A stretch of 64,000 nucleotides of DNA from the sequence record NC_061440.1. The stretch is one strand, 5' to 3'. Both the position numbers and the translations under genes were made by a program. A model generated the notes under the pieces. The model saw only the letters and a list, made by a program, of their open reading frames with translations, had not been told where the DNA came from and made no database searches. Below are positions 55 through 63,042 of this stretch, one piece after another; positions within the stretch are counted from its first letter, which is position 1; every line of letters starts with the position of its first letter.

Positions 55-1680
55 TTAGGCTTCTGGTTCAACGTAGGTGTTGGTACCAGTTACGAATGCG
101 ATTGCAACTTTCTTCGCGGTGGTCAGCTCTACACGCAGGCTGTTCGCGTCGATGAACACAACTTCGTCAGGGATGATCTGGTAGCCAGTATCATCAACAA
201 CGGTGACGGTACCGAACTTGTGGCCAGCGTTGTGGGTGAAGGTGTGTGCAGTAGCTGCAACGTCACCGCTCGCAGTTTTGTCGTACTGATAAACTTTAGC
301 AGCAGAACCGCTAGAGCCAGCAGCGATTGCATCAGTAACGAACTTCTTGCTCACCGCAGAGTTGTCGGTGTAGTCAGCGCTGTCACCAGACAGGGTGATC
401 TGAGTAACTTCACCACCAGCAGCGTCGATGAAACCACCAGCAGTTTTAACAGCAGCAACATCGACAATGATTTTGCTGTTATCAACGTCCTGTTTCAGGC
501 CGGTACCCAGTGCAGCAGCAGCGATCTGGCCGTAGCCAACACCGCCGTCAGCGATTGCGATACCGTCAACAGAGCGAGACAGAGTAGCGCCGTCCAGTTT
601 AACGCGAGTGCTGCCTGCGTTATCTTCCAGACCGCCGTTGGCGTCCAGTTTAGCAGTCACGGCATTGCTGGTGATCTGAATACCAGCGCCGACTTTAACG
701 TTGACAACGTTACCAGCTTTTTCCAGACCGTCACCAGCGTTGAACTCGGAAGCGCCGCCGAATGTAGTCCACTCAGTACCATCGAAACGACGATACTCTT
801 TGATATCTTTAACCCAGGTAACCGCACCACCAGCTTCGCTGTCAGTTGGGTCGAACACGATAACGAACGCAGTGCCGTTATAGCGAACGATCATGTTGTC
901 AGCCAGACCAGTGATAGAACCGAAGTTCGGGTTGATGGTGTCAGCAGACAGGATGATGTACTGCTTACCGTTCTCCAGAACAGGGTCCAGAGTGCCGTCA
1001 GCCTGAATACCGTCAGAGTCTTTCAGCCAGTCGATGCCAGCGATAGCGTTGTCGATATCGATCTTACGAGCAGCGTCGTTCGGGTTAGCAGGAGCGGCCA
1101 GGTTAGCAACGGTATTACCGTTAGCATCCAGGTCGCCAGTCAGTTGGCCGTTAGCCGCATCAACTTTACCCGCCAGCGCAGTTTCGTTCGCGTTAGCTTT
1201 GTTGCTAACAGCAGTGATCTGAGACTGGATGTTAGAGCTTGCGCCAGACAGATAGCCCAGCTCGGCAGCAGTGATGGAGGAGCTTTGCAGTTCAGAGTCG
1301 GCGCCAGCGATAACAACCGCGTTCTCGGTCAGGCCGCTGATTTTGTCTTGCTTGGTAGCAACAACGGTTTCAACGTGTTTCTTAGAAACAGCCGCGTTGT
1401 CAGCAGAAGCAGACTGGTCAGGACCAGACAGTTCGAGGTCAGCAGTCATTGCCACAGAACCGTCAGCCAGGATAGCGCCTTCTACAGAACCACCACCAGT
1501 GCCCAGCTCTTTGATTGCAGTACCGTCGAAGTATTTGTACTTCTTATCGGTGCTGTTGTACCACATGCGGGCTTCTTGTGCCGCGACCAGATCACCAACT
1601 ACAGGGTCGGCTGCAAGAACTTCTGGGCGGAAGTTCTTAATAGAAGCGCCGAGCATTAAATCAAGATTACCAGTACGCAT
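55..1680 (-). CDS. Virion structural / fibre-associated protein (541 aa)
   Basis: AGGAG SD upstream. Gly/Ala/Asp-rich beta-repeats (GAGIQ, GDGLEK). C-terminal HTFTHNAGHK..VTVVDDTG..DANSLRVE module is shared with the 275-aa protein. Confidence 0.75.
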   Translation of the reverse strand: MRTGNLDLMLGASIKNFRPEVLAADPVVGDLVAAQEARMWYNSTDKKYKYFDGTAIKELGTGGGSVEGAILADGSVAMTADLELSGPDQSASADNAAVSKKHVETVVATKQDKISGLTENAVVIAGADSELQSSSITAAELGYLSGASSNIQSQITAVSNKANANETALAGKVDAANGQLTGDLDANGNTVANLAAPANPNDAARKIDIDNAIAGIDWLKDSDGIQADGTLDPVLENGKQYIILSADTINPNFGSITGLADNMIVRYNGTAFVIVFDPTDSEAGGAVTWVKDIKEYRRFDGTEWTTFGGASEFNAGDGLEKAGNVVNVKVGAGIQITSNAVTAKLDANGGLEDNAGSTRVKLDGATLSRSVDGIAIADGGVGYGQIAAAALGTGLKQDVDNSKIIVDVAAVKTAGGFIDAAGGEVTQITLSGDSADYTDNSAVSKKFVTDAIAAGSSGSAAKVYQYDKTASGDVAATAHTFTHNAGHKFGTVTVVDDTGYQIIPDEVVFIDANSLRVELTTAKKVAIAFVTGTNTYVEPEA

Positions 1681-1703: not shown

Positions 1704-2447
1704 TTAGAAGAACTGACTGTCACAACCATCAAGGCTACAGCGTAACGCTTGATATGCAGTGGCACGTTCTTCCGTTAGATTGATATACTTATCGTCAATA
1801 TTGTACTTCACTCTAACAGGCACGTCGTACCCATCGAGCAGGCCGTGTCGCTTATAAGCATTCAGGCGTAGCACAGGTGAACTGACCTTAGCATGTTCCA
1901 TGATGTTCAGGTCAATCTTGTCGGCGTAAATGAATGGACGCTCTCGCTTACACATGATGTAATCAATCTCATGCAAATTAAAGAGTGTGAAATTCATATA
2001 GCCAATAATGAACTCCGCAATCAGCCTGAATGAATCAAACATATCAGGCCTAAATTGTTGTGTGAGAATATGATCAACGTACGGTCTGATCTCGGTACGC
2101 ATCTCATACCAACTCTCACAGAACAATGCAGGGAAGTCTTCAGGGTGATGGGCCATAAGGCCCAACACTTCTTTCTCTGTATCTGCAAAGGAACTTAAAA
2201 TGTCTGAGGCATCGTCAGACGCCTCGACACCACGACCGGTCGAAATAAAACGACGCTCAATGTCTCTCAACCAAGATTCCGAAGCAGATAGGTATTGGAG
2301 CAGTGTTTCTCTCGCGGCAGCCGAGAACTCATGCCTGTCGGAGTCAAGAACCTCACCGAGCATGAAGGCTTTCGCTTTGTAGAAATCAATATAGCGCTCG
2401 GCGGTAAATCGTCGAAACCCTATGTTATTCCTCAAATAGCCCATCAT
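1704..2447 (-). CDS. Hypothetical cytoplasmic, mostly helical protein (247 aa)
   Basis: Long ORF coupled to the upstream gene by an ATGA overlap at 2444-2447. No recognised motif. Confidence 0.75.
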   Translation of the reverse strand: MMGYLRNNIGFRRFTAERYIDFYKAKAFMLGEVLDSDRHEFSAAARETLLQYLSASESWLRDIERRFISTGRGVEASDDASDILSSFADTEKEVLGLMAHHPEDFPALFCESWYEMRTEIRPYVDHILTQQFRPDMFDSFRLIAEFIIGYMNFTLFNLHEIDYIMCKRERPFIYADKIDLNIMEHAKVSSPVLRLNAYKRHGLLDGYDVPVRVKYNIDDKYINLTEERATAYQALRCSLDGCDSQFF

Positions 2448-2959
2448 CGCAATGCCCTCAGATCATTCAACTCCGTGTTGCCTTGAGCGTTTGGAGTTGT
2501 GTAGAGAGAACTGGAGATGCTCTGCAATCTCAGCCCGAGCTTCTCAAGTTCTTGCTGGTTGCCACCTAACTTCTCAAGGACTTCACGCATAAGTTCAACG
2601 GAGCCTTGATGGTCACGGGATTGCTGGGAAATGATTCGTTCGAAGCGCTGCATAGCACGGAGAACAGAGTTCAATCCCTCTTTCATATCCAAATTATCGA
2701 CTGGCGCAGAATCAGAAATTGACTGAATCATTCGCATCATCTGCGCCAAGTCGGCTTGCAATTCATCGCTATCTGTATTGATAGGACGACCTGCTTCTAG
2801 CTCTGCGTTACGCGCTTTCAATTGCTCCAGTTCTTCAAGCTGAGGCAGTAGCTTCAACCAAACGTATGCACCACCTGCGATTAGCAGAACTACAGAGAAG
2901 ACAGTCGCGTAGTTGGACGCAAGCAACTTGTCTAAAATTTCCGCCCACATTATATTCAA
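2444..2959 (-). CDS. Bitopic membrane protein with coiled-coil tail (171 aa), holin-like candidate
   Basis: Single hydrophobic segment YATVFSVVLLIAGGAYVWL followed by heptad-rich LEELEQLKARN...LEKLGLRLQ. Coupled to both neighbours by 4-nt overlaps. Confidence 0.7.
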   Translation of the reverse strand: MNIMWAEILDKLLASNYATVFSVVLLIAGGAYVWLKLLPQLEELEQLKARNAELEAGRPINTDSDELQADLAQMMRMIQSISDSAPVDNLDMKEGLNSVLRAMQRFERIISQQSRDHQGSVELMREVLEKLGGNQQELEKLGLRLQSISSSLYTTPNAQGNTELNDLRALR

Positions 2960-3240
2960 CCCTTACAGGTGTTATCGTTCAGATCAACAATGACCCTCTC
3001 GGCACCTGGTTCGTTTACGTCAGTGGTTTTGTACGTGTGCGCCATCCTAGGCTTGAACTCTAAGCAGCTCTGACCGTAACGTCCATCGACAACACAGATG
3101 GCGGACAGGCAACTCACATCTTCCTTGAGAATTAAATTTTCAGGAGACTGGTTGACACTCCTAACGGCAGTGATTACAAACCCAACCACAGCGATAGCAA
3201 TGACAACCACAATGGCAATCCTAATTCGCTTGGCTTGCAT
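2956..3240 (-). CDS. Small membrane-anchored protein with 4-Cys extracytoplasmic domain (94 aa)
   Basis: KRIR, then IAIVVVIAIAVVGFVITAV (positive-inside N-terminus), then a domain with 4 Cys. GAGG SD upstream. Confidence 0.75.
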   Translation of the reverse strand: MQAKRIRIAIVVVIAIAVVGFVITAVRSVNQSPENLILKEDVSCLSAICVVDGRYGQSCLEFKPRMAHTYKTTDVNEPGAERVIVDLNDNTCKG

Positions 3241-3275
3241 TTTTGGTTCTACCTCACAGTCCTTTTATCTGACTG

Positions 3276-3283
3276 AAATTAGC
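3276..3283 (-). promoter_or_regulatory. GCTAATTT motif (candidate late promoter)
   Basis: Intergenic, 36 nt upstream of the 3240 start. Same octamer recurs upstream of several other genes. Confidence 0.55.
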
Positions 3284-3305
3284 GAACCACACGCCCTGCG
3301 AGGAT

Positions 3306-4334
3306 TTATTCCTCCAATACGCCACTAATCTCCGCAAACATATTTTTGTACACTAAACTCCCACCAAGTTTGTCCAATCTGTCCACCAGCACATATAGCT
3401 TCGGTGTCGTGCGCATGTTAGCCCACGTCTTCTCGTTCGGGTCGAGTCCGCCTACAGTAGGCACAATCACCAGACTGAGGTTTTTATTGGCTCGAACGAA
3501 ACCGATATCCAGATGCGTCCTGTTTATAGTCCTGATAAGCCTATTGATTGCGTCCAAACCAACAGGCTTGTTGAATTCCGTATCATTGACAGTGTTGACC
3601 AAACTAATGAGAATTCCTTTGTCTTTCGTGTCGATATCAAACAGGTCTGCTTTCAGATCTGCCACAGTCGATGCCGAGAAGTATGACACGTCGTGGTTAA
3701 GATCTTTCAGGCAGGAACCTAAGGCACGCGCCGATTCGATGTGAGCCACGTTGTCATCCCGAAGAATATACACAGGCGCATCTGGCTGGTGGGTGCGTTT
3801 CGATATCAAATCAATAAGCTCGCAAGAGGGTCGACCAACAGTAGCCAGCCCCTTGTTAGCAATATAGAATTTGTCACGATACACGTCATATATGTTAGGA
3901 GGCATATACTTCATGTAGTCATCGTCCAGACTAAGAATCATTCGGGGCTTAGTTAATTGAACGACCAACTGCATACTACGGAGCGAAGCCTTGTACTCTG
4001 TATCGGAAAGCACACGGCTAATCGGCAGATACTGCACAACCACAAAGCGTTCGTCGATTGAGTCAACGACAGACCGTATGAGTGTGCTGCCTAATGTAGG
4101 TCCAGCAGAGAACTGGGTAACGATCATCAAACTGCCTGCGACCAAGCTACGTGTCTTAGCTACCGTCTGACCGCTACCCAGCTCGACTACGGAGGACTCC
4201 CACGTTAAGGCTGGATCGTCTCGTCCGCTATCGGCATGTACATAAGCTGCGCTACACCAGAGACAGGCTCCAAGAATGTAAGCAGCAATACGTTGTCCGG
4301 ATCGGCCTCTGCTGGATTGACCGTTTCGGGCCAT
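3306..4334 (-). CDS. Secreted periplasmic-binding-protein-like (ABC_sub_bind / sensor-kinase input-type) domain protein (342 aa)
   Basis: AGGAG SD upstream of ATG 4334. Arg-rich n-region, h-region IAAYILGACLWCSAA and YVHA|D cleavage site. LMIVTQFS...VVVQYLPISR...KPRMILSLDDDYMKY resembles the VLILHSY...EYLD.KR...KPDLII..DD.A pattern of PBP-type input domains of histidine kinases and diguanylate cyclases. Confidence 0.6.
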   Translation of the reverse strand: MARNGQSSRGRSGQRIAAYILGACLWCSAAYVHADSGRDDPALTWESSVVELGSGQTVAKTRSLVAGSLMIVTQFSAGPTLGSTLIRSVVDSIDERFVVVQYLPISRVLSDTEYKASLRSMQLVVQLTKPRMILSLDDDYMKYMPPNIYDVYRDKFYIANKGLATVGRPSCELIDLISKRTHQPDAPVYILRDDNVAHIESARALGSCLKDLNHDVSYFSASTVADLKADLFDIDTKDKGILISLVNTVNDTEFNKPVGLDAINRLIRTINRTHLDIGFVRANKNLSLVIVPTVGGLDPNEKTWANMRTTPKLYVLVDRLDKLGGSLVYKNMFAEISGVLEE

Positions 4335-5032
4335 AGCACTTCTCCTCTCTCGTCAGTGACGTAAGGAATGCCGGCGCCTTTACCCAATCCGTGTCGTAAA
4401 GCCCAAACAGTGTCGGCATTCTCCTGCACGAACACTAACCCTTTGACTTGCACATCGGACGTTGCATTCTCCAGTACCTCAACACGCTTCTCAAGAAGCT
4501 CGGCATCGGATTGCAGCACACGAATAGCAGACAGGTTAGAGTTAACGCGCTGGTTCATGTTGTTGAACATGGTGAAGAACGAGTTGTTCATCGCCGTGCG
4601 AACGCCGTCCGTATAGGACTTTGGAATTAGTTCATCGTTGTCAAACGTTGTTACGCCTGTACGCGCGAGAACTTTACCGGTAAGACGTCCACCACTTGCG
4701 CTGATAATCTGAGGAGCAGGCAAATCAGCCTCATCCCAGATTTGAACAGTGGTCATCACCGTATTGTAGTCGGTCTCTTCCTGCCACGTATTCTTATACG
4801 GTGCAGTAGCCGTTTTGGACTTACGACGCATGACTTTCTTATAGCCAGCGTTCGATCCATCGGCGATGATCCAGAGACCGTTCAGTGGAAATACGTGAGT
4901 AATAGGTTCGGCGAACGAAAGAATAATCGTAACGTCGGCGCCTACCTTGTACGCAATATCGTTCGACGCAGAAAGCCCTTGCTGTTGAGCAAGAGCAATC
5001 AGCGTGTCCACGTAGTTAGTCAACTGGCTCAT
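4205..5032 (-). CDS. Virion structural protein (275 aa)
   Basis: SD upstream. Coiled coil followed by a C-terminal W.LRHGLG...VTDERG...LLLTFLEPVSG.A module paralogous to the C-terminus of the 541-aa protein. Confidence 0.75.
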   Translation of the reverse strand: MSQLTNYVDTLIALAQQQGLSASNDIAYKVGADVTIILSFAEPITHVFPLNGLWIIADGSNAGYKKVMRRKSKTATAPYKNTWQEETDYNTVMTTVQIWDEADLPAPQIISASGGRLTGKVLARTGVTTFDNDELIPKSYTDGVRTAMNNSFFTMFNNMNQRVNSNLSAIRVLQSDAELLEKRVEVLENATSDVQVKGLVFVQENADTVWALRHGLGKGAGIPYVTDERGEVLWPETVNPAEADPDNVLLLTFLEPVSGVAQLMYMPIADETIQP

Positions 5033-5492
5033 CCGAAACTCCTAACGATTTTAAAATTGAAGAACTTGTATCGGAGAAGGCCTTAGCTATTGCTTTAGCG
5101 GCAACCTTATCGACAACGAGAGTGCTGATTCGGCCTTTGGTGTTGCATACAACTGTTTGCGGTGCATACTGTGCAAGCGCCAAAGCGAATAGCAGATGGT
5201 TGCCTAGATCACCAGAGATAGAAACCTCCACGTCAAGTTCAGGCACGTAGATGTTCTGGTTGATTTCGGCAACAAACTGCGCCAGCGCAACGGGGTCGAA
5301 CTCGGGAAGCGCTGTATCATAGTCCTCAACAAGATCAATCTGTCCTGTTTCCGGATAGTAACGAAATGCAGCAGGGTCCGAGATGATGCGACCGAATAGA
5401 TCGTCGCTCACCTCGATGCAATACTCATCCGTCTTTTCACGCACACGACCAACAATGCTGTTGTTCGCTGGGTTGATTCTGATAATAGGCAT
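5016..5492 (-). CDS. Hypothetical protein, possible tail-fibre assembly chaperone (158 aa)
   Basis: GGGAG SD. Directly follows a fibre gene, the usual chaperone position. Confidence 0.6.
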   Translation of the reverse strand: MPIIRINPANNSIVGRVREKTDEYCIEVSDDLFGRIISDPAAFRYYPETGQIDLVEDYDTALPEFDPVALAQFVAEINQNIYVPELDVEVSISGDLGNHLLFALALAQYAPQTVVCNTKGRISTLVVDKVAAKAIAKAFSDTSSSILKSLGVSDEPVD

Positions 5493-5494
5493 AG

Positions 5495-6316
5495 TTAATC
5501 TCCCTTAGCCTCGAACCAGAAGTCCCAGCCTACAGTATTGGTGCCGCTGGACTTAATGGTAAAGCCACCTAACAAGGCGTTCTCGTTCACTGCACTAGTA
5601 CCATCAAGGTTGTAGAGCGTAAACGTCTTAGCCTGGTTCGTTGCCGCATTCAAGAACGTAATCTGAATGCTTAGGCAGCGGTTGATGAATGGGCTGTTGA
5701 AGATAACGTGAATGGTGTCAGTAGTTGATTTGTTCACGATGCGACCCATGTTCTGGGTAAAGCCCGTGTTCATATCGCGGTTGCTACCAATCCATGCGTT
5801 TGGAATCACAGCACCTGTTACAGGGTCAAGTGCTTGCGCTGTTCGATACTCGTCGATAGCAGCATCACGCCCCGGGTTACCAGTAGGACCCGTCGCACCA
5901 GTAGGGCCGACTGCGCCCGTGTTACCAGTAGCGCCGACAGGGCCCGTGTTACCAGTAGGACCGTTACGGCCTCTTGGGCCACGAGGGCCAGGACAACCGT
6001 CTTCACCATCACGTCCGTCACGACCATCAGCACCAGGAAGACCGCGTAAGCCGTCTTTACCCTGCTTGCCTTCACGTCCTGACTTGAGCTGGTCGGCAGT
6101 AGGCAAACCAATAACGTTCGTCTGACTGCCGTCCGGCCAAATGAGTGTTAACGTACCTGTTGTCGTATCGAACTGAGCACCCTGAGCACCTGGAATCTTC
6201 GCAGCTTCTTGCGGACTGATAAACGCGACCGCAGTAGAAGTCTTCTTACCTAGCACTTTACCGACGGGGTCGGTGCCACCGTCGATGAGTGAAGGATTAA
6301 TGCGTGTTAAAGACAT
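5495..6316 (-). CDS. Collagen-like fibre protein with C-terminal gp53-like/lectin-like domain (273 aa)
   Basis: Continuous Gly-X-Y triplets (GREGKQG...GPTGNPG). C-terminal F.SPF...C....GGFTI...WFEAKG tail-fibre end module. Confidence 0.85.
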   Translation of the reverse strand: MSLTRINPSLIDGGTDPVGKVLGKKTSTAVAFISPQEAAKIPGAQGAQFDTTTGTLTLIWPDGSQTNVIGLPTADQLKSGREGKQGKDGLRGLPGADGRDGRDGEDGCPGPRGPRGRNGPTGNTGPVGATGNTGAVGPTGATGPTGNPGRDAAIDEYRTAQALDPVTGAVIPNAWIGSNRDMNTGFTQNMGRIVNKSTTDTIHVIFNSPFINRCLSIQITFLNAATNQAKTFTLYNLDGTSAVNENALLGGFTIKSSGTNTVGWDFWFEAKGD

Positions 6317-6326
6317 GGGTGAACTC

Positions 6327-6530
6327 CTAACCAGTCAGTGTTGTCCAATCAGGTTGGCCCGATTGCCCGGCTTCTGGGTTTTTGACTTTCGTGTTATTGA
6401 TCGTCATACGAACCCAACGGACAGTACCGTCCGCATCTTGCCACCGAACCTTCGTGCCACCGTATGCTAAATTAGCTACCCATCTGTCTCTGCTTGGGTC
6501 TTTGAATGCTAAACGTGCATATGCAGGCAT
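6327..6530 (-). CDS. Small Trp-rich fibre-associated protein (67 aa)
   Basis: GGAG SD. Resembles the N-terminal ~55 aa of the 672-aa protein. Confidence 0.7.
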   Translation of the reverse strand: MPAYARLAFKDPSRDRWVANLAYGGTKVRWQDADGTVRWVRMTINNTKVKNPEAGQSGQPDWTTLTG

Positions 6531-6539
6531 AAGTTCTCC

Positions 6540-9416
6540 TTACTCGATCTCACTCGGTTCCCAGCACAGAATTGGGCGGCGCCATACTTGGAACACACCG
6601 ATAGGCGAAGCACGGCCAGAATCAATGAAGCAGTCCATAGTTGTACCACCAGAGTTACCGCTCTGCATAAGAGTTTGCAGGTTAGCAATCCAAGAAGCAC
6701 GTCCACCAGAGTCTGCCTCAAACAGTCCTTCCCACACCATATCAAAAGCACCGTTCCATGCGTTGAAGTGGTGAGAAGAATACGCACCATCACCGACTGA
6801 ACAAAGAACCATGTACTGGTAATCTTTGACGCAAGGAATAGCGTAGTTATTGCCGCGCGGAACTGCTGTACCGTTGTTATTAAAGATACACTCCCAGCCA
6901 GTACGATCAGCAGCACCAGTAGTTAAGAACAGAGGACGACGAATGATCATCATAATCCCGTTCTCACCGCCATTGTTGCTGGACTTCTCGCAGTACGCAT
7001 TACAACGTAAGGAACGGTCCACAGTGAATGTGGTTGAGTTTGAGAAGTCACGGCAGTAGTAGTTCGATCCCCACTTAGGCAGATATTCTGCTGGTGGTAC
7101 AAAGAAGTGACGCTCCGCAAGTTCGATCTCACCGTAACGGTCGTAAGCAAATACAATGTACTCGTAGCCCGCCTCAATCTGAATGTTGTGGCCTTGACTG
7201 CCGATACCATTCCACTTCCATACAACCTGCCAATCGTTCGTATCACGTTCAGGCATTTCGGTAATCAACTGATAAGGACGCTCATATACGTGCCACACCT
7301 TCCCTTCTTCTGTCGTGTTGATATACAACGAAGAAGGGTCATTGATGTTGCCGTTAGACGTACCACAATAAACTTTATGCGATGCACCAGCAGAGTTGTA
7401 GATAGTGCCTGAGCTTACAGACTGGAACATGTCCCAGTTCATCATCAGGTGCGAGGTACACATTTCATTCTGGCCACTACCATCAGAGGTTGTGAGCAGG
7501 TACTCGTTGAGGTCTTTGAACGCATAGCGCACATAGTTAGAGCCAGCACGGTTAACGCGGTGTACCCAGTCATGCGATTGAACTTTCGGCACAGGGAAGC
7601 AAGGGTTAGTGACAGACACGACGAAGTTTTTAGTTTCGTACATCGGCAGTTTCTTGAAGCGGTTATCACGAATCGTTACCGTGTGCTTCATGCCATATGT
7701 CTGCGCACCATCCATACCGCCCAGCACTTTGTAGTACGACTCATGCGCACTCTTGGTGTTTTCGTACAGACTAGTGATGCCAAGCCCAACGTTGCCGTCA
7801 CGGTCAGTGCCGCAGCAGAAGGGCACGTTACCTGAATCAAAGTCAAAGCCAACAGAGTAATAGCTGTCAGGTGAACTTGATTTAGGGCCCCAGTAGAGTT
7901 CGGTGTAAGCAGAACCTTCACCGATACCCGGCTCACCGAACACGCAGTATGCAGCACGATACACGTACTGACTGCCCTGGAACACACGGCGCGATGCACC
8001 AATGCGATACATAGCAGCAGGAAGGCCACCCTGAACACGGTTAACGTCAGCCGTATCATACGACACAACGAAGACATAACAGTCGGTGCCGATTGAGTTG
8101 AGGAACGCAGCACAGGCAGCAGCGTTAGTTGTACCTGGAGCTGTACCTTCGGCCGATGCGTGAATGTCAAACGAGCGGCGCTCAAGCAACGCAAGGTCAG
8201 ACTTACGAATCTTATAGACGTTCAGGCCACGCGTATCTCGGTACGTCACACCATTATAGACAGTGTAGCCATAGTCACCAGTGTCTAGGTAACGCTGATA
8301 ACCAACTACGTGCGAGAACAGTTTACTACGTGCTTGCAGCGACTGACCATTCTGATTCGACCAACTGACCGACACATCACCAGCAGCCATACGTGCTGCC
8401 CAGTCATCAGGCTTGTATGGGTATGTGGTAACATCGAAGTTCACACCGTACGCGGAGCCTGGCTCTACGCAGCATGGATTGCGATAGATGATTGGTGGAT
8501 CAATCACTATGTCATCAGGAATATCGACTTGACCGCAGTACAGTTGCTTCCACGTACCAGGCTGACCTCCGAGCGAACTAGGTCCCGCAGCAGGTGTTGT
8601 GTTGAACTGATAGATAGCAGACGTGCGATAGTTAATCTGATTGTGAAGCTGAGGAACGTTCGTCCACGCAATGTGATTACCGAACGAGTTAATGCTTTTG
8701 TCGTGTGCTGCAGGAGTCGAGACAACATAAGCCTGACCGTTACTGCGAATGCCGAGTGGGTTGAAGATAGCGTTGAAGTTAACGTTACCCTCGTAGGCAT
8801 TCTTCTGCAATACAATCAGGTGGACTCCGTTGCGGTGAGCTTCACGTAAAGCAGTGAGCATCGCTGTAGGCATACTCTGGTTAGTCGCAGACAACAGCAG
8901 CATGACACAACTGAACTGTTTGAAGTAACGGTAGTCGCCGTTGTACCCGTAAGCGCCTGCGTTAATCTCCTGCCAGCTATGCGCTAACATATCGAGAGGC
9001 ATACGCTGCATGTAACCAACGAGCTGGCCCCATGATTCCATTGCTGTGTCGTCGTTGACAGGAGCAAGGTCGGAGATGACCAACATCGTACTGCCGTTTG
9101 TAATGTTTGCGTTGAAGCCACGCTGGGTCAGCAAATGGCGGAACACACCCATGTTGTTGATAGACTTGTTACGGTAGTTGCCCATCCAGCCGTAGTTTGA
9201 ATCCACAAGAGGGCTACCGTCTCGAACAAATCGACCATTCATATAAACAGAGGCAAAGCCGCAGACGTATGCTTGCGCGTGTCCGTCCACTACGAACGAA
9301 GTAAAGCGGGAAGCATCTACCGCCATCGCATTAACAGCAGCCTCAGAGCCATTGCCGGGACTACCACTAAACACAGGAGTGATGCCTCGTGCGTACAGGC
9401 AACTTTGTTGCAGCAT
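6540..9416 (-). CDS. Fibre / receptor-binding protein with ILEI (PANDER-like) domain (958 aa)
   Basis: AAGGA SD. RGLNVYKIRK...RSFDIH...AAFLNSIG...VFVVSYD...YRAAYCVFG matches the ILEI carbohydrate-binding-like domain. Three aromatic-rich repeats near the C-terminus. Confidence 0.7.
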   Translation of the reverse strand: MLQQSCLYARGITPVFSGSPGNGSEAAVNAMAVDASRFTSFVVDGHAQAYVCGFASVYMNGRFVRDGSPLVDSNYGWMGNYRNKSINNMGVFRHLLTQRGFNANITNGSTMLVISDLAPVNDDTAMESWGQLVGYMQRMPLDMLAHSWQEINAGAYGYNGDYRYFKQFSCVMLLLSATNQSMPTAMLTALREAHRNGVHLIVLQKNAYEGNVNFNAIFNPLGIRSNGQAYVVSTPAAHDKSINSFGNHIAWTNVPQLHNQINYRTSAIYQFNTTPAAGPSSLGGQPGTWKQLYCGQVDIPDDIVIDPPIIYRNPCCVEPGSAYGVNFDVTTYPYKPDDWAARMAAGDVSVSWSNQNGQSLQARSKLFSHVVGYQRYLDTGDYGYTVYNGVTYRDTRGLNVYKIRKSDLALLERRSFDIHASAEGTAPGTTNAAACAAFLNSIGTDCYVFVVSYDTADVNRVQGGLPAAMYRIGASRRVFQGSQYVYRAAYCVFGEPGIGEGSAYTELYWGPKSSSPDSYYSVGFDFDSGNVPFCCGTDRDGNVGLGITSLYENTKSAHESYYKVLGGMDGAQTYGMKHTVTIRDNRFKKLPMYETKNFVVSVTNPCFPVPKVQSHDWVHRVNRAGSNYVRYAFKDLNEYLLTTSDGSGQNEMCTSHLMMNWDMFQSVSSGTIYNSAGASHKVYCGTSNGNINDPSSLYINTTEEGKVWHVYERPYQLITEMPERDTNDWQVVWKWNGIGSQGHNIQIEAGYEYIVFAYDRYGEIELAERHFFVPPAEYLPKWGSNYYCRDFSNSTTFTVDRSLRCNAYCEKSSNNGGENGIMMIIRRPLFLTTGAADRTGWECIFNNNGTAVPRGNNYAIPCVKDYQYMVLCSVGDGAYSSHHFNAWNGAFDMVWEGLFEADSGGRASWIANLQTLMQSGNSGGTTMDCFIDSGRASPIGVFQVWRRPILCWEPSEIE

Positions 9417-16428: not shown

Positions 16429-16436
16429 AAATTAGC
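16429..16436 (-). promoter_or_regulatory. GCTAATTT motif (candidate late promoter)
   Basis: Lies between a terminator and the SD/start of the 780-aa gene. Confidence 0.6.
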
Positions 16437-23217: not shown

Positions 23218-23225
23218 AAATTAGC
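23218..23225 (-). promoter_or_regulatory. GCTAATTT motif (candidate late promoter)
   Basis: Immediately after a terminator and 24 nt upstream of the PAAR start. Confidence 0.6.
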
Positions 23226-41840: not shown

Positions 41841-41848
41841 AAATTAGC
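41841..41848 (-). promoter_or_regulatory. GCTAATTT motif (candidate late promoter)
   Basis: Intergenic, 43 nt upstream of the sheath start. Confidence 0.6.
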
Positions 41849-44398: not shown

Positions 44399-45499
44399 CT
44401 AGCCTCGAACAGCTTTTGCGACTGAACGCACGTTCGCCAGAGTGAAGGAGAAGGTGCTAGACAGCAACCAGCCGCGGTCGGTGTTACCCTGGTTAGCGCC
44501 AGAGGTCGGAGTAGACTGGGTGCCGCCACGAGTGGTGTACACTGCGTGGTAGTCCTGGTCAGCCAGAACGTACAGTTCGCCGTCCTGCAGAACGCGGTGC
44601 TCTGGAGCACGGAAGCCGTCAGTTACCAGTTCCATACCCAGCAGGGTACCCAGACGACCGGTGGTGATCAGGTCATACTTAGACACTGGGTCCAGAGCAG
44701 AGCTGAACTGATCGTTACCAACGATATCGTTCCAGTAGTCCTGCGCCATCACGGCAGTGCTTACAGGCAGCGGCCAGCTAGACACAGAATTTTTCAGGGT
44801 AGACAGCAGACGCGGAGTCAGGTCACCGTGAACGAAGGTCATCGGGTTAGCAACGCCGACTGCCTGGTCACAAGCACGTTTCCACAGACGGTCTTCTGCA
44901 ACCATGATAGAAGACAGGCCGTCTTGCTGCGCACGGTCCAGCAGGTCGCCGTTGATCTGGTCCAGGTCCATTTTGCTGACGCGGATGTTGGATTTCAGTT
45001 CGAACTCAGCAGGCGTGTATACACGACCGCGGAACTGGTAGTAACCCATGTCAGAAGGACCGGTCGCGATGATTGCTTCCGCCTGGTGAATTTTCAGTTC
45101 GATACGAGCGATATCGCCCTGACGAACGGTAGCGCCTTTACAAACTTTGCGCAGCAGGCCAGCACGTTCAGCACGGTCTTCGATAGATGCAACGATAGAA
45201 GCACCCAGAGAAGCCCACTTCTCACCAGAGCTGTCAGCCACAGCTTCCTGGAACAGTTCGATCTTCTCTTGCTCTGACAGGCCGCCAGCGTTTGCAGAAG
45301 TAGAGTGAACCAGTTCGCCGTTCTGGAATGCGCCCATCAGCTTAGTGATTTGGCCCAGCAGGTCTTTTTGGCTCGATGCGTTGATCTCACCAGTGGAAGA
45401 GGAAAGCGCCAGCTCACCTTTACCACCAAAACGCAGGTCTTCGATAGGCGCGCCATTACGCAGGGTTACTTTAGCGCCGCGCATTAAAGAGTTGTTCAT
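44399..45499 (-). CDS. Major capsid protein (HK97 fold, 366 aa)
   Basis: AGGAG SD and strongly biased codons. FELKSNIRVSKMDL.Q...DLL.RAQ......IM..ED and G.LGTLLG.E...D patterns. Canonical position after protease, scaffold and decoration genes. Confidence 0.8.
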   Translation of the reverse strand: MNNSLMRGAKVTLRNGAPIEDLRFGGKGELALSSSTGEINASSQKDLLGQITKLMGAFQNGELVHSTSANAGGLSEQEKIELFQEAVADSSGEKWASLGASIVASIEDRAERAGLLRKVCKGATVRQGDIARIELKIHQAEAIIATGPSDMGYYQFRGRVYTPAEFELKSNIRVSKMDLDQINGDLLDRAQQDGLSSIMVAEDRLWKRACDQAVGVANPMTFVHGDLTPRLLSTLKNSVSSWPLPVSTAVMAQDYWNDIVGNDQFSSALDPVSKYDLITTGRLGTLLGMELVTDGFRAPEHRVLQDGELYVLADQDYHAVYTTRGGTQSTPTSGANQGNTDRGWLLSSTFSFTLANVRSVAKAVRG

Positions 45500-45561
45500 T
45501 AGTTGCTCCTGAGATTAATCTCGTAAGTTTTCAGATACTAAACAGTCACGGTGCGCGACGA

Positions 45562-46284
45562 TTAAGCGCCGTAAGAGGAAGTGGTTTCGATGATCAGGTA
45601 GCCGCGCTCAGTAGTTGGCGCTTGCTTGATGATCAGACCTTTCAGCTCGGTGCCGTTACCACCGATGGTCAGCAGGCCGTTTGGACCCAGGCTTGGGTGC
45701 AGCACGTTGTCAGCAGACCAGTCAGCAGTCGGGTCAAACATAGAGGTAGCAACGTTACCCAGTTTGATGTACGCGATGCGGCCTTCAACGTTAGACGGCA
45801 GACCACCGATAGGAGCATCAGCAGTGTAAGAACGCGCTTCGGTCACGGTCAGTTCGTAAGCATACTGGATGCGAACTTTCTTACCAATGTCGTCAGCGTG
45901 GAAGTACAGGTCAGCACCCTGAACACCGACTTTACCTTCGGCAGTAGGAGCAGCGTTAGCTTCCTGATCTGCTTTAGTACCGTCGATTTTAACCAGCAGT
46001 GCGCCAGCGTTAGGAACGCGGGATGCAGTGAACTTTTTGGTAGCGTCGATAACGAACTCTTCCACACGGTTCATGTTCGCAGGCGGCATAGAGCGAGCCA
46101 GAGCGAAACCGGCGAATACTTCGTCAGCAGCACCAGTAGACAGACGCAGGAAGGAGTGACCGCCTTCGCGAGTCCAAACCAGTGCGACGCCTTCTTCGTG
46201 GATTACTTCACCCGGCAGCAGATCAGCTTCCTGGGTCTGTACGATTGCGGTAGCGTTTTGAAACAACATAATCAAATTCTCCAA
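45562..46284 (-). CDS. Capsid decoration / head structural protein (240 aa)
   Basis: Highly biased codons, immediately upstream of the MCP, beta-rich sequence. Confidence 0.6.
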   Translation of the reverse strand: MENLIMLFQNATAIVQTQEADLLPGEVIHEEGVALVWTREGGHSFLRLSTGAADEVFAGFALARSMPPANMNRVEEFVIDATKKFTASRVPNAGALLVKIDGTKADQEANAAPTAEGKVGVQGADLYFHADDIGKKVRIQYAYELTVTEARSYTADAPIGGLPSNVEGRIAYIKLGNVATSMFDPTADWSADNVLHPSLGPNGLLTIGGNGTELKGLIIKQAPTTERGYLIIETTSSYGA

Positions 46285-55681: not shown

Positions 55682-57598
55682 CTAGCTGGCGATTGGGTCT
55701 TTGTTGACAGGATAATCTTCCACCATATCGATCACGCGATTGAACAGCTTAGGCGTCATATCTTTCACATGTTCGGCATAGTCAAAGAGGTTTTGTTTAC
55801 GCGCACGGTTCACACGGACCTGACGCACTTCATCAGGGCTGTTGGTGATATCGTACAGCGTATAGACCACGATATTATCAGAGGCGTTGTGCGTACTAAC
55901 ACGGACGATAACCCAATCACGATTGAGTTTGGCATCTGCTCTGAATCGCAGCACGTCACCTTCTTCCGCTTCTTCTGCGCGAGCATTAGGAGTGGATTTG
56001 TTGGCGGCAGCAATCTTCTTCGCAGTCTCTTTAGCTTCGGCTTCTGCGGCAGCAACGTCAGAGTCTTGGTCTTCCTCTGCGTCATTCTCATCTACCGCGT
56101 CAGTAGCGTCGGCTTCTGGGTCATCATCGGAGGCTTCGTCGTCTTCTGCTCCAGAATCTTCTGAGTCAGCTCCTTCGTCGTCAGCACCTTCATCATCCAC
56201 GGATTCGGAATCATCGTCGGCAGTGTCGTCCTCATTTGATTCATCATCAACATCTGGATCGCTATCGTCAACGTCTTCTTCTGCATCTGGGTCTTCCTCT
56301 TCCTCTTCCTCTTCACCGTCAGTAGAGTCTTCTTCCTCTTCTTCTGGCGCAGGTTTAGCAGGCTTGGCCCCTTTCTTAGGACGCACTTTAGGTGGCGGAG
56401 TATCTTCTTCGTCGTCTTCTGGTTCGTCAATATCAGAAAGGTCGAGCGCAGGTTCTTCGTGGTCTTCTGAATCATCACCACCAAACAGCGAACCTACAGA
56501 ATCTTCGATGTTGAACATGTCGCCTGCAAACGGGCTGCGAGATAACACGTCTTCGAGTTTCTGCTCATCGAAGTCCAGATCGATTTCGACTTCTTCAATC
56601 GCATCGTCCAGTTCTTCGTGCTCGATGACACGCACACGCTTACCACGTTTGTCGATACCATCTTCGTAGACAGTGCGCACTTCTGCTTTAGGCGCTTCGA
56701 TCTCACCGGACTTAACCTTGCTACGCAGGTCTTTCATCTCGGCAGCACGGGCCTGTTGCTTTTTGCGTGTCTCTTTCGCCAGCTCTTTACGCTGCTGCTT
56801 TTGCTCAAGAATTTTCGCGTTGTTGGCGAGGCGTACAGCTTCTTCCTCTTCCAGTTGCGAGCGCTTACGATGACGACGCACCTGCTTGCGATATGCTTTC
56901 AGTGTATCAATGTCCACATCACCTTTCGGCCAATCATTGAAAGGCAGAATGTTGGTGTCGTGAACAAGCAGATCGTATTGTGCGTCATCAATCTTAACGA
57001 ACAGGCCTTCGGTGTTAATGACCACACCACCTTTACCTTGTCGCAAGAAGCGTACACCGATCATGTCGTTTTTGTACAGCTTGAGCATACCCTTAGAAGT
57101 CTTAATAGGATATTCCATGCTCGGAACCATACGCCACTGATAGTTATCGAAGTTAACACCGTACACAGCCTCAGACTTCACAGACTTAGGCGAAAAGCGG
57201 GCAGCATCGAACTGCACACGATTGATTTGACGCTGCATGGTTTTAGCGCCAGCAGTCTTCGTGCGCGTTTCACGTTGAACAACATCGGGGACCTTGCGCA
57301 GTTTGGAGCTACGCTCAATCAGGAACAGGCCTGTTGTTTTATCGAGAGGGAAGTCAACGTGAGGCATGTCGGCAAAGATTAATGTGTAGCGACCGCCATT
57401 GCGCAGCGGGAGAATGCCGAAAGTATCTCCATCACGAATCATACGCTTATGAGTTCGTTGGGATACTTCCTTGCCGCGTGAACCTTTATACTTCATCCAC
57501 GCGTACTTCGTTACTGCATCTTCATGAGATGCGGACACGGAAAGTATCATGTTCTTGTCTCTATGTTGTCTGTCACTCATTGAAATTAGCTTACGCAA
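55682..57598 (-). CDS. Hypothetical protein with two SH3-like paralogous domains, a coiled coil and an acidic tract (~620-638 aa)
   Basis: Probable start at ATG 57580 or 57550 (MILSVSAS). Contains WMKYKG...GDTFGI...YTL...D.P..DF.LD and a D/E-rich linker. Confidence 0.75.
   Translation of the reverse strand: MRKLISMSDRQHRDKNMILSVSASHEDAVTKYAWMKYKGSRGKEVSQRTHKRMIRDGDTFGILPLRNGGRYTLIFADMPHVDFPLDKTTGLFLIERSSKLRKVPDVVQRETRTKTAGAKTMQRQINRVQFDAARFSPKSVKSEAVYGVNFDNYQWRMVPSMEYPIKTSKGMLKLYKNDMIGVRFLRQGKGGVVINTEGLFVKIDDAQYDLLVHDTNILPFNDWPKGDVDIDTLKAYRKQVRRHRKRSQLEEEEAVRLANNAKILEQKQQRKELAKETRKKQQARAAEMKDLRSKVKSGEIEAPKAEVRTVYEDGIDKRGKRVRVIEHEELDDAIEEVEIDLDFDEQKLEDVLSRSPFAGDMFNIEDSVGSLFGGDDSEDHEEPALDLSDIDEPEDDEEDTPPPKVRPKKGAKPAKPAPEEEEEDSTDGEEEEEEEDPDAEEDVDDSDPDVDDESNEDDTADDDSESVDDEGADDEGADSEDSGAEDDEASDDDPEADATDAVDENDAEEDQDSDVAAAEAEAKETAKKIAAANKSTPNARAEEAEEGDVLRFRADAKLNRDWVIVRVSTHNASDNIVVYTLYDITNSPDEVRQVRVNRARKQNLFDYAEHVKDMTPKLFNRVIDMVEDYPVNKDPIAS
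57583..57590 (-). promoter_or_regulatory. GCTAATTT motif (candidate late promoter)
   Basis: Directly after a hairpin terminator and upstream of the ATG starts at 57580 and 57550. Confidence 0.6.
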
Positions 57599-61860: not shown

Positions 61861-63042
61861 TTAGCCGCCTGTTACTTCTGGTTCTTTGTAACCCTGCAGG
61901 AAGAAGATACGCATACCGGTGTTGTTCGGACTGTTAGCAGTCAGAGCTTTGTAGGTACGTTTCTTCGGCGTGCTGCCGTCATCTTCCATTTCGTTGTACA
62001 CCTGCACGTCGATCAGGGTACCGTTGGAGATAACGTCAGAAGACGCGTAACCCACGATATCCATTTCGTACGGATAGCTGTAGCGCTGGGTGTTGAAGCC
62101 AGCAGGCAGACGGAAATCGAAGTGGTTATCTTCGGAGAACGGAACCATCTGGTACGGGTTGATAACCGCGTAGCTATCAGCACTGTGTACGTGCGCTGGT
62201 ACTGGCAGAGTCGGCGCGTTCACATCAGACTCACGCACGGTGTAGCGCATGATCTGGAACGAGCCTGGGCTGTTAGTCGCAGGACGAACTTCCAGATCGT
62301 TGTTGATAGAGCCGCCGCCGTTAACAGAGAACATGCAGAACAGAGGCGCTTTACCATCGACGACAACAGATCCATCAGAGTTGATAGCACGTTGAACTAC
62401 CAGCCATGCACCACGGCAACCATCAGAGTCACGACCTTCAACTGCGAGATGCAGAGCGAAGCCATGCTCAGTCAGAGAGATGTGGTAGGTGAACGGTGAT
62501 GCTTCTGGGTCTGCCCAAATCAGGCTGTCTGGGTTCTGCTGGCCAGCAGTGGCGTTGGTGGCGTTGGTTGGGTACGCCATGGTGCCGCCATAGTAAACAG
62601 CGCCGTTACTGTTTGCAATGCCACGGTGCCAGAAACACACATCGTAGTCGCCAGTAGTACCACCAGTGTTACCATTAAAGCGAGCACCGACCTGACCAGC
62701 ATACTCAGGGAAAGAAGTACCGCCAACAGTAACAGTACCCGTCTTAGCGATGGTGCCTGTGTCAGAGATCTGCTCCGGGGCAGCAACGTACAAGTTGGTA
62801 CGCTTATCAGTGACTTTACAAGCTACACGCCAGCGCTGTTTGCCTGCACCAGTACCAGCCAACGGATCGATAGTCGAAGTAGCTTCAATAACGAATGAAG
62901 CCAGGTCAGTGGACGGAATCGTCGAGGCGACGGTACCGTTAACGCTCACCAGCTGGAAACCATTATCCACCAAATCCTGAAGGATAGATTTCCACATCTT
63001 GATGTTGCTGGTGAAGCCAGATTTCACAATCAGTTTGTTCAT
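61861..63042 (-). CDS. Virion structural protein, paralog family member (393 aa)
   Basis: Strong codon bias. Shares P.TY....T.HG.AL.....G.D..G....W.V.QR, PLFC.FS..GG, I.R.TV.E, INP.Q.V, YP..LD..GY.S.DV.S.G and GMR with the neighbouring gene. Confidence 0.75.
   Translation of the reverse strand: MNKLIVKSGFTSNIKMWKSILQDLVDNGFQLVSVNGTVASTIPSTDLASFVIEATSTIDPLAGTGAGKQRWRVACKVTDKRTNLYVAAPEQISDTGTIAKTGTVTVGGTSFPEYAGQVGARFNGNTGGTTGDYDVCFWHRGIANSNGAVYYGGTMAYPTNATNATAGQQNPDSLIWADPEASPFTYHISLTEHGFALHLAVEGRDSDGCRGAWLVVQRAINSDGSVVVDGKAPLFCMFSVNGGGSINNDLEVRPATNSPGSFQIMRYTVRESDVNAPTLPVPAHVHSADSYAVINPYQMVPFSEDNHFDFRLPAGFNTQRYSYPYEMDIVGYASSDVISNGTLIDVQVYNEMEDDGSTPKKRTYKALTANSPNNTGMRIFFLQGYKEPEVTGG

Follow-up and report, generated by a model that had tools for sequence, protein, structure and literature searches.

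A four-gene envelope module conserved in the jumbo-phage lineage of Erwinia phage pEa_SNUABM_22: predicted architecture and candidate roles

Introduction

Phage proteins that span the cell envelope govern the timing of cell burst and the entry of a second phage, and only a few such systems are understood, mostly those of T4 and lambda. The lysis-inhibition proteins T, RI and RIII of T4 constitute a phage-encoded set with periplasmic, bitopic and cytoplasmic members. T4 Imm, T4 Sp and T5 Llp are small phage-made envelope proteins (the genes llp and cor adjoin tail or receptor-binding genes), while phi29 p16.7, with an N-terminal membrane helix followed by a cytoplasmic coiled coil, acts alone and binds DNA. 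Cyanophage PstS serves as the model for a phage substrate-binding protein feeding a host importer, and in sensors such as LuxP-LuxQ, TorT-TorS and ChvE-VirA a soluble periplasmic protein with the type I binding-protein fold stands beside membrane-anchored partners. The present analysis concerns a module of four genes (gp103, gp102, gp101 and gp100) of the jumbo phage Erwinia phage pEa_SNUABM_22 (NC_061440, Alexandravirus, 265 kb), located at positions 1704-4334 of a 64,000-nucleotide stretch (the window) whose base 1 is base 62001 of the record. In contrast to the T4 lysis-inhibition genes, which are scattered, those of the module are clustered and coupled.

The four proteins form a set without recognisable relatives. 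All members sampled from a widespread jumbo-phage lineage carry it, among them biocontrol candidates against fire blight and soft rot. An architecture spanning the inner membrane, encoded together with virion genes, is well supported, and the products would assemble into one, probably stoichiometric, complex. A preliminary description of this DNA had proposed a trans-envelope signalling, lysis-timing or superinfection-sensing system. The evidence for the architecture is given below, followed by the roles that it might serve.

A fixed module within the fibre-gene cluster

All four genes are encoded on the minus strand, in the order gp103 (3306-4334), gp102 (2956-3240), gp101 (2444-2950) and gp100 (1704-2447), as part of a long block of leftward genes for fibre, baseplate, tail and head proteins; the order, strand and limits of the open reading frames agree with the preliminary description. 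Translational coupling of the last three genes, claimed there as well, is borne out by the 5 nucleotides (nt) that separate the gp102 stop from the gp101 ATG and by the ATGA overlap of the gp101 stop with the gp100 start. In distant members of the family all four genes abut or overlap by a few bases, and such tight coupling fits products made in fixed proportion.

Related loci were fetched via similarity to gp100 or gp103 and were examined with profiles of the four families. The resulting 32 loci include 22 from IMG/VR, those of phages Y3, Yoloswag, fHe-Yen9-02, PaBG, Lu11, NCTB and HRDY3, and two metagenomic contigs. Some of these loci, though none of those from IMG/VR, went into the gp102 and gp101 profiles. 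Every one of the 32 loci (32/32) has the four genes side by side, with order and strand unchanged. Synteny across related phages had been named beforehand as the point at which the idea of a functional module could fail, and co-occurrence in conserved order is what was found. The module extends over phages of Erwinia, Dickeya, Yersinia and Pseudomonas (PaBG, Lu11, HRDY3), the marine phage NCTB and metagenomes, with identities down to about 20-25%, and the lineage that carries it is the phage group around PaBG, Lu11 and NCTB (PMC7412058). Neither profile found a match in the outgroup phage Motura at E 1. Conservation across hosts as different as Erwinia, Pseudomonas and a marine one argues for a target that is general to the envelope or to the phage itself, and against a host-specific receptor.

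The module is phage-restricted. No bacterial relative was found and gp103 has no detectable sequence relative in bacteria, the sole match in a narrow alignment search of 185,579 prokaryote genomes being a 7-kb contig of a metagenome-assembled genome (MAG). Word-index searches with gp103, gp100 and gp101 returned close phage relatives only. Scans of the four proteins against Pfam, PHROG (E <= 0.1), NCBIfam and PADLOC yielded only their own orphan PHROGs and weak helical noise; the single PADLOC match was a chance-level one to a coiled coil (MkoA, E 0.007, 12 bits), meaning that no defence-system model was matched. The papers on PaBG and AD1 are silent on the module genes, and the virion proteomics of PaBG covers 14 proteins only, with gp229-234 not mentioned in its text.

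Several database entries deserve mention here. The 7-kb contig (JAVWLC010000123.1) is binned as a Raoultibacter MAG, probably in error for a phage fragment, and its gp103 homologue is full-length (61% identity). A gp100 homologue of about 50% identity occurs in the records of Salmonella phage Sen-NF (108 kb) and Alcaligenes phage Afa-NA1 (78 kb), and an assembly entered as Salmonella Infantis has a gp101 homologue (73% identity) on contigs of up to 267 kb. Unrecognised jumbo phages of the lineage may be the source of these three entries, as fragments or as contaminating contigs.

The exported protein gp103

In RefSeq and GenBank, gp103 begins at Met70 (3306-4127, 273 amino acids), 69 codons downstream of the start of the long open reading frame (3306-4334, 342 amino acids), and the annotated protein lacks a signal peptide on account of this start. 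The ATG at 4334 is preceded by a strong Shine-Dalgarno sequence and opens an N-terminus with a basic stretch, a hydrophobic stretch at residues 16-34 and a VHA|D site. A Sec signal peptide is predicted for residues 1-34 (4233-4334, minus strand, within the overlap with gp104), with cleavage expected after VHA, that is, after residue 34. The long frame is open in Y3 (341 amino acids), in Yersinia phage fHe-Yen9-02 (322) and in Yoloswag (336), with length changes in multiples of three, and the "short" methionine is missing in Yoloswag. In Erwinia, Yersinia and Yoloswag-type phages gp103 overlaps the 3' end of gp104 by 130 nt, read in two frames (4205-4334, minus strand), but not in PaBG, Lu11, HRDY3 or NCTB. 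In these four phages and in two metagenomic contigs the gp103 homologue overlaps the upstream gene by 4 nt at most, and the signal peptide is still encoded. Every homologue examined has the basic, hydrophobic and small-x-small N-terminus, and the MAG contig aligns in tblastn to gp103 residues 1-342 at 61% identity. The long form is taken as real in view of the open frame in relatives, the family-wide signal peptide and this full-length match, and secretion of the first protein, as originally described, is thereby sustained. The N-termini of the family are mostly without a usable lipobox, which argues for a soluble periplasmic protein rather than a lipoprotein.

The fold of gp103 was approached through its AlphaFold2 model, which is poor (mean predicted local distance difference test, pLDDT, of 51) and displays an alternation of strands and helices (a beta-alpha pattern). 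When this model was compared by VIA-align with 48,161 PDB representatives, the top 50 matches were all type I periplasmic binding proteins, led by the L-Trp-binding 3LFT_B (Z 13.0 over 146 residues); Z was 11.1 against Clostridioides difficile CD0873 (6HNI) and 10 against LuxP. Foldseek placed LIVBP first (E 2e-4). As an independent line, and as a lead only, ESM language-model features place gp103 nearest to PF04392 clusters (0.89). Together these comparisons of a predicted model support a type I periplasmic binding protein at the level of fold, the sense in which the earlier label "PBP-like" holds. Such a fold is rare in phages.

Membership of PF04392 at the level of sequence was considered and fails, since the hidden Markov model (HMM) of the family does not match and none of the loci has adjacent genes for an ATP-binding cassette (ABC) permease or ATPase. 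Even with a cut-off of E 10, the PF04392 HMM had no match anywhere in the phage genome, and gp103 itself has no Pfam or NCBIfam match. An exhaustive profile search of the gp103 family gave 33 matches, of which 27 were aligned and scanned; none of these 27 remote relatives matches PF04392 at E <= 0.01 or carries a relevant Pfam domain. Searches of PDB sequences with both gp103 profiles gave chance matches only. The structures 3LFT and 6HNI are presumably PF04392 members, which agrees with the ligands listed for that family. PF04392 structures bind L-Trp, L-Tyr and L-Phe (PMC10443332). Within the gp103 family Tyr102, Glu253, Asn271 and Asn285 are invariant and His274 nearly so; most of the invariant residues map to strand ends of the second lobe in the model, where the cleft of a type I fold would lie.

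The resemblance raises the prospect of auxiliary uptake, in which gp103 would bind a substrate and pass it to a host ABC importer and the other three proteins would be accessories. Its nearest folds are indeed ABC substrate-binding proteins for aromatic amino acids, and RefSeq names gp100 an "ABC transporter". Nevertheless, the module contains no permease or ATPase (gp100 has neither a Walker A motif nor a Pfam match), and a fixed set of four genes finds no explanation in uptake. Moreover, the lack of a detectable bacterial sequence relative of gp103 speaks against a gene recently acquired from a host and matched to one of its permeases. Uptake is the least probable of all the roles discussed here.

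Two bitopic proteins and a cytoplasmic helical bundle

The 94-residue gp102 (2956-3240, minus strand) has three lysine or arginine (K/R) residues ahead of a very hydrophobic helix at about residues 8-26 (about 3163-3219), which is followed by Cys44, Cys49, Cys59 and Cys92. These four cysteines (C-x4-C-x9-C ... C) and Met1 are the sole invariant residues among 10 homologues with identities down to 19%. The charge distribution supports an N-in/C-out orientation, and two disulfides are the natural reading of the predicted outer domain. The bitopic protein with four extracytoplasmic cysteines, as first described, is retained on the strength of the helix, the N-side K/R residues and the invariant cysteines. 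As a separate observation, an intact gp102 homologue (94-95 amino acids, four cysteines) lies unannotated in Erwinia phage Y3 (in both GenBank and RefSeq) and in Pseudomonas phages HRDY3 and Lu11, at 4253-4537, 5237-5524 and about 6502-6786 of the fetched loci.

For gp101 the preliminary description had proposed a single-helix coiled-coil protein of 171 residues, which corresponds to the open reading frame from the alternative start TTG at 2959 (2444-2959, minus strand). The ATG at 2950 (2444-2950, 168 amino acids), used in RefSeq and suggested by the PHROG alignment, is the more likely start. A single membrane helix (about 2855-2911) is present, as described, and the protein has no cysteine. 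On the other hand, a single long coiled coil is not upheld: the heptad periodicity is segmental, broken by proline and glycine, and was reached by 6 of 500 shuffles. The best-conserved parts are an acidic N-tail of 13 residues and the extreme C-terminus. Across 20 homologues the N-flank (8-17 residues) holds 0-1 K/R and is net acidic, while the 15 residues after the helix hold 1-4 K/R. By the positive-inside rule this bias, seen in 20/20 homologues, favours N-out/C-in, a rule of thumb and not a measurement, and the helical part of gp101 is probably cytoplasmic. In this topology it would lie beside gp100 in the cytoplasm, and the conserved ends of gp101, together with the conserved N-terminus of gp100, would fit contacts at both faces of the membrane.

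The last protein, gp100 (1704-2447, minus strand, 247 amino acids), has no hydrophobic segment and is modelled with confidence by AlphaFold2 (pLDDT 93.3, predicted template modelling score 0.90) as five long helices with a small alpha/beta domain at the C-terminus; its N-terminus is the best-conserved part. The earlier view of a soluble protein stands with these features. In structural searches Foldseek returned nothing from the PDB below E 0.5, VIA-align found generic helical bundles only (Z <= 7.5) and the ESM Atlas gave nothing, while BFVD holds four uncharacterised viral (phage) look-alikes (template modelling scores of 0.71-0.84). Neither a Pfam match nor a G-x4-G-K-[ST] (Walker A) motif was detected. 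The name "ABC transporter" carried by gp100 is spurious, as the protein has no ABC ATPase motif, no membrane segment and a five-helix fold. The PHROG labels "ABC transporter" (gp100) and "membrane protein" (gp101) are the origin of the RefSeq names, and the former has spread from phrog_19088 to RefSeq and to the Yersinia, Lu11, PaBG and HRDY3 records.

Taken together, the signal peptide and the hydrophobicity of the open reading frames support the distribution of the products originally proposed, namely periplasm, membrane, membrane and cytoplasm.

Promoter-like motif and relation to the fibre genes

The coupled genes had been described as lying behind a motif of their own, and this proved correct: GCTAATTT is found at 3276-3283 (minus strand), 35 nt before the gp102 ATG, is over-represented, and has a conserved core. 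The window holds 6 copies, all on the minus strand, against 1.4 expected. Five of the six are intergenic and upstream of genes, with (A/C)GCTAATTT at 3276-3283, 16429-16436, 23218-23225, 41841-41848 and 57583-57590; they stand 20-45 nt ahead of gp102, a 780-residue tail-region gene, the PAAR gene and two other genes of the late block, the genes behind the motif including tail, baseplate and PAAR genes. The sixth copy (6469-6476) is within a coding region, and the copy at 57583-57590 comes after a GC-rich hairpin. A TAATTT core occurs at the same place ahead of gp102 in Y3, in the Yersinia phage and in Yoloswag, which represent three other genera. By its position and conservation the TAATTT motif would be a phage promoter element for the structural block, and thus a candidate late promoter of the phage group. 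Scans for consensus sigma-70 promoters and terminators remained at chance level. A search of sequencing runs brought up no infection transcriptome; the runs found were metagenomes and two wastewater metatranscriptomes containing about 5-10% of the words.

In relatives the module is set between gp104-like and gp99-like fibre genes, with a gp104 homologue just upstream in each relative whose flanks were examined and a gp99 homologue 3' of it in all. This constant setting would be explained by a part in morphogenesis, in which the module would be a membrane-anchored platform or chaperone set for the fibres gp106, gp105, gp104 and gp99, or a tether of late assembly. In favour of such a part, the module is a lineage-wide core block within a long late structural transcription unit, it shares its promoter-like motif with tail genes, and its proteins change at much the same rate as those of the neighbouring fibre genes (38-55% identity to Yoloswag for the module proteins and 46-65% for the fibre proteins). 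Furthermore, if gp101 is N-out/C-in, most of it and all of gp100 would face the cytoplasm, where virions are built. Assembly of the virion in the cytoplasm, however, leaves an exported gp103 and a disulfide-bonded periplasmic domain without an obvious part, no similarity to known fibre chaperones was detected in Pfam or PHROG, and HRDY3 keeps the module although its homologues of gp104-106 are not detectable. On balance, a morphogenetic role is considered unlikely. Should fibre assembly, or the exclusion of other phages discussed below, nevertheless be its task, the module would have a bearing on host range and on the mixing of phage cocktails.

With regard to the flanks themselves, the downstream gp99 (55-1680, minus strand) is a fibre-like virion protein (phrog_16122, E 9e-191). 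The upstream gp104 (4205-5032, minus strand) is labelled "HNH endonuclease" via phrog_24148, a name that was rejected, since no Pfam domain, HNH included, was matched. The protein resembles tail-protein PHROGs at its N-terminus, and over its last 65 or so residues it matches PHROG 21918, as does the C-terminus of gp99; gp104 is probably a short fibre. Further along the fibre cluster, gp108 (window 6540-9416, 958 amino acids) is ILEI-domain-containing according to the Y3 annotation, a eukaryote-type name that is unusual in a phage fibre cluster. The public annotation thus needs correction in the start of gp103, in the names "ABC transporter" and "HNH endonuclease", and in the 94-residue gene that several genomes leave unannotated.

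Candidate lysis genes elsewhere in the genome

Components of lysis can be proposed at two other places in the genome. A candidate lysis cassette closes the leftward block that contains the module and lies about 16 kb ahead of the window (record 44656-45738). It consists of gp077 (holin-like, with at least two membrane helices), gp076 (a one-helix protein) and gp075, which is built like a unimolecular spanin, with a lipobox (LVSGC) and a C-terminal membrane helix. HRDY3 has these three as well, with an M15 peptidase after them. A rightward block of small genes (record 234014-235320) encodes the sole SLT-domain protein of the genome (226 amino acids, at 234.6 kb), a transglycosylase with an N-terminal membrane or signal segment, and, two genes upstream of it, a 71-residue protein with two helices; the pair may be a signal-anchored endolysin and its small holin. 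No domain of the T4-lysozyme or chitinase type was found.

These genes bear on the suggestion that the module is itself lysis machinery, in which gp102 or gp101 would serve as holin, as antiholin or as a component akin to a spanin. Its proteins are small, bitopic and probably late, T4 t adjoins fibre genes, and a similar cassette, with genes for a holin-like protein, a spanin and an endolysin, begins right after the gp99 homologue of Lu11 and HRDY3. The adjacency was weighed as a specific link between module and cassette and set aside, both being judged to end the late transcription unit. Instead, the module and a separate cassette side by side in Lu11 and HRDY3 argue that the module is not a lysis cassette, and in pEa_SNUABM_22 the candidates for lysis are gp077, gp076, gp075 and the SLT transglycosylase. 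In addition, the module includes no lipoprotein, gp101 has no cysteine and a charge bias opposite to that of an i-spanin, and no holin or spanin family of Pfam or PHROG was matched. A direct role in lysis is hence very unlikely. The link to T4 T, RI and RIII that the preliminary description had raised found no sequence or profile match in Pfam, PHROG, NCBIfam or PADLOC, and neither did one to any holin, antiholin, spanin or exclusion family.

A possible role in envelope surveillance

The role placed first, though only tentatively, is a sensing or regulatory one, in which the module would keep watch on the envelope or on superinfection and thereby tune late events. The grounds for this rank are the fold of a binding protein, an architecture that reaches from the periplasm into the cytoplasm, and conservation across very different hosts. 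According to this proposal, in which the physical complex, the topology of gp101, ligand binding by gp103, late expression and the biological role are all inferred, the four genes would give rise, late in infection, to one complex spanning the inner membrane. gp103 would be exported by the Sec route, lose its signal peptide and act as a soluble, two-lobed periplasmic protein that binds a small ligand or a periplasmic macromolecule, and it would dock onto the disulfide-stabilised ectodomain of gp102. In the membrane gp102 would pair with gp101, whose acidic N-tail would point to the periplasm, while its helical part and conserved C-terminus would be cytoplasmic and hold gp100 at the cytoplasmic side. 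The complex could then signal a periplasmic or envelope event to the cytoplasm, be it damage to the wall, a metabolite or superinfection by a phage of the same kind. In response, late events, the timing of lysis among them, would be adjusted or a further infection would be blocked, while lysis itself would not be the work of the complex.

A more far-reaching version is held to be doubtful. It credits a strictly lytic jumbo-phage lineage with its own periplasmic ligand-sensing apparatus, in which a receptor of binding-protein fold acts through two bitopic proteins on an orphan helical-bundle effector in the cytoplasm, as a new kinase-free class without a cellular relative. Such an apparatus would read the condition of the host envelope or of the surroundings (superinfection, wall fragments or aromatic metabolites) and set the timing of late events. 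If periplasmic sensing is true, a lytic phage would be shown to obtain information by a new route. PaBG is described as having a long latent period and slow lysis, which is compatible with regulated lysis and proves nothing.

Several points weigh against a sensing role. The proposal draws on architecture and conservation, from which the function is deduced, and late expression of the module is read from the motif alone. No similarity to a known sensor, antiholin, holin or exclusion protein was found in Pfam, PHROG, NCBIfam or PADLOC, and gp100 has no recognisable kinase, DNA-binding or other output domain. The binding protein at its centre is known from a poor model (mean pLDDT 51), with the PF04392 HMM silent at E 10, and sensing leaves the constant place between fibre genes unexplained. 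Besides, the known exclusion genes imm and sp of T4 are early genes.

Pure superinfection exclusion would dispense with the signal: gp103 and gp102 would neutralise an incoming tail tip, lysozyme or ejected proteins, in the way that T4 Sp acts on gp5, and gp101 and gp100 would block DNA entry. A location in the periplasm and inner membrane suits this task, genes of this type often adjoin tail or receptor-binding genes (T5 llp and cor being examples), and a target in the phage's own conserved injection machinery would explain the conservation across unrelated hosts. Yet the motif suggests late, not early, expression, no similarity to the Imm, Sp, Llp, Cor or Sie families was detected in Pfam or PHROG, and four coupled genes, one of them for a 247-residue cytoplasmic protein, exceed the needs of the known exclusion systems. 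Exclusion as the whole function is regarded as improbable. The probability left over from the roles considered belongs to something not yet thought of.

Comparison with known systems

Among the described systems, T4 T/RI/RIII is comparable to the module in that a phage-encoded set with periplasmic, bitopic and cytoplasmic members could couple a periplasmic signal to a late decision. It differs in that the module has no sequence or profile similarity to it, comprises four genes and not three, and has a periplasmic member with a binding-protein fold; further, gp101, unlike T, is probably N-out/C-in, and this phage has a separate holin candidate. An i-spanin is inserted N-in with a periplasmic coiled coil, whereas the K/R bias, as a rule of thumb, favours N-out/C-in for gp101. 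With phi29 p16.7 gp101 shares the topology suggested by its charge bias, a likeness in architecture only, and it differs in coming with two periplasm-facing partners.

T4 Imm, T4 Sp and T5 Llp resemble the module as small envelope proteins made by the phage, but the module is dissimilar in sequence, larger, equipped with a cytoplasmic protein and conserved across hosts with different surfaces. The PF04392 (ABC_sub_bind) proteins are secreted, as gp103 is, and are its best structural and language-model neighbours, while the silent HMM and the lack of adjacent transporter genes set gp103 apart from them. The sensors LuxP-LuxQ, TorT-TorS and ChvE-VirA offer the likeness of a soluble periplasmic protein of type I fold with membrane-anchored partners. 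In contrast to sensors of the LuxP-LuxQ type, the module has no histidine kinase, HAMP or known output domain; its partners are small bitopic proteins and an orphan helical bundle, and it is phage-encoded and phage-restricted. The module thus at most works like T4 RI/T/RIII or like LuxP-LuxQ, and is a member of neither.

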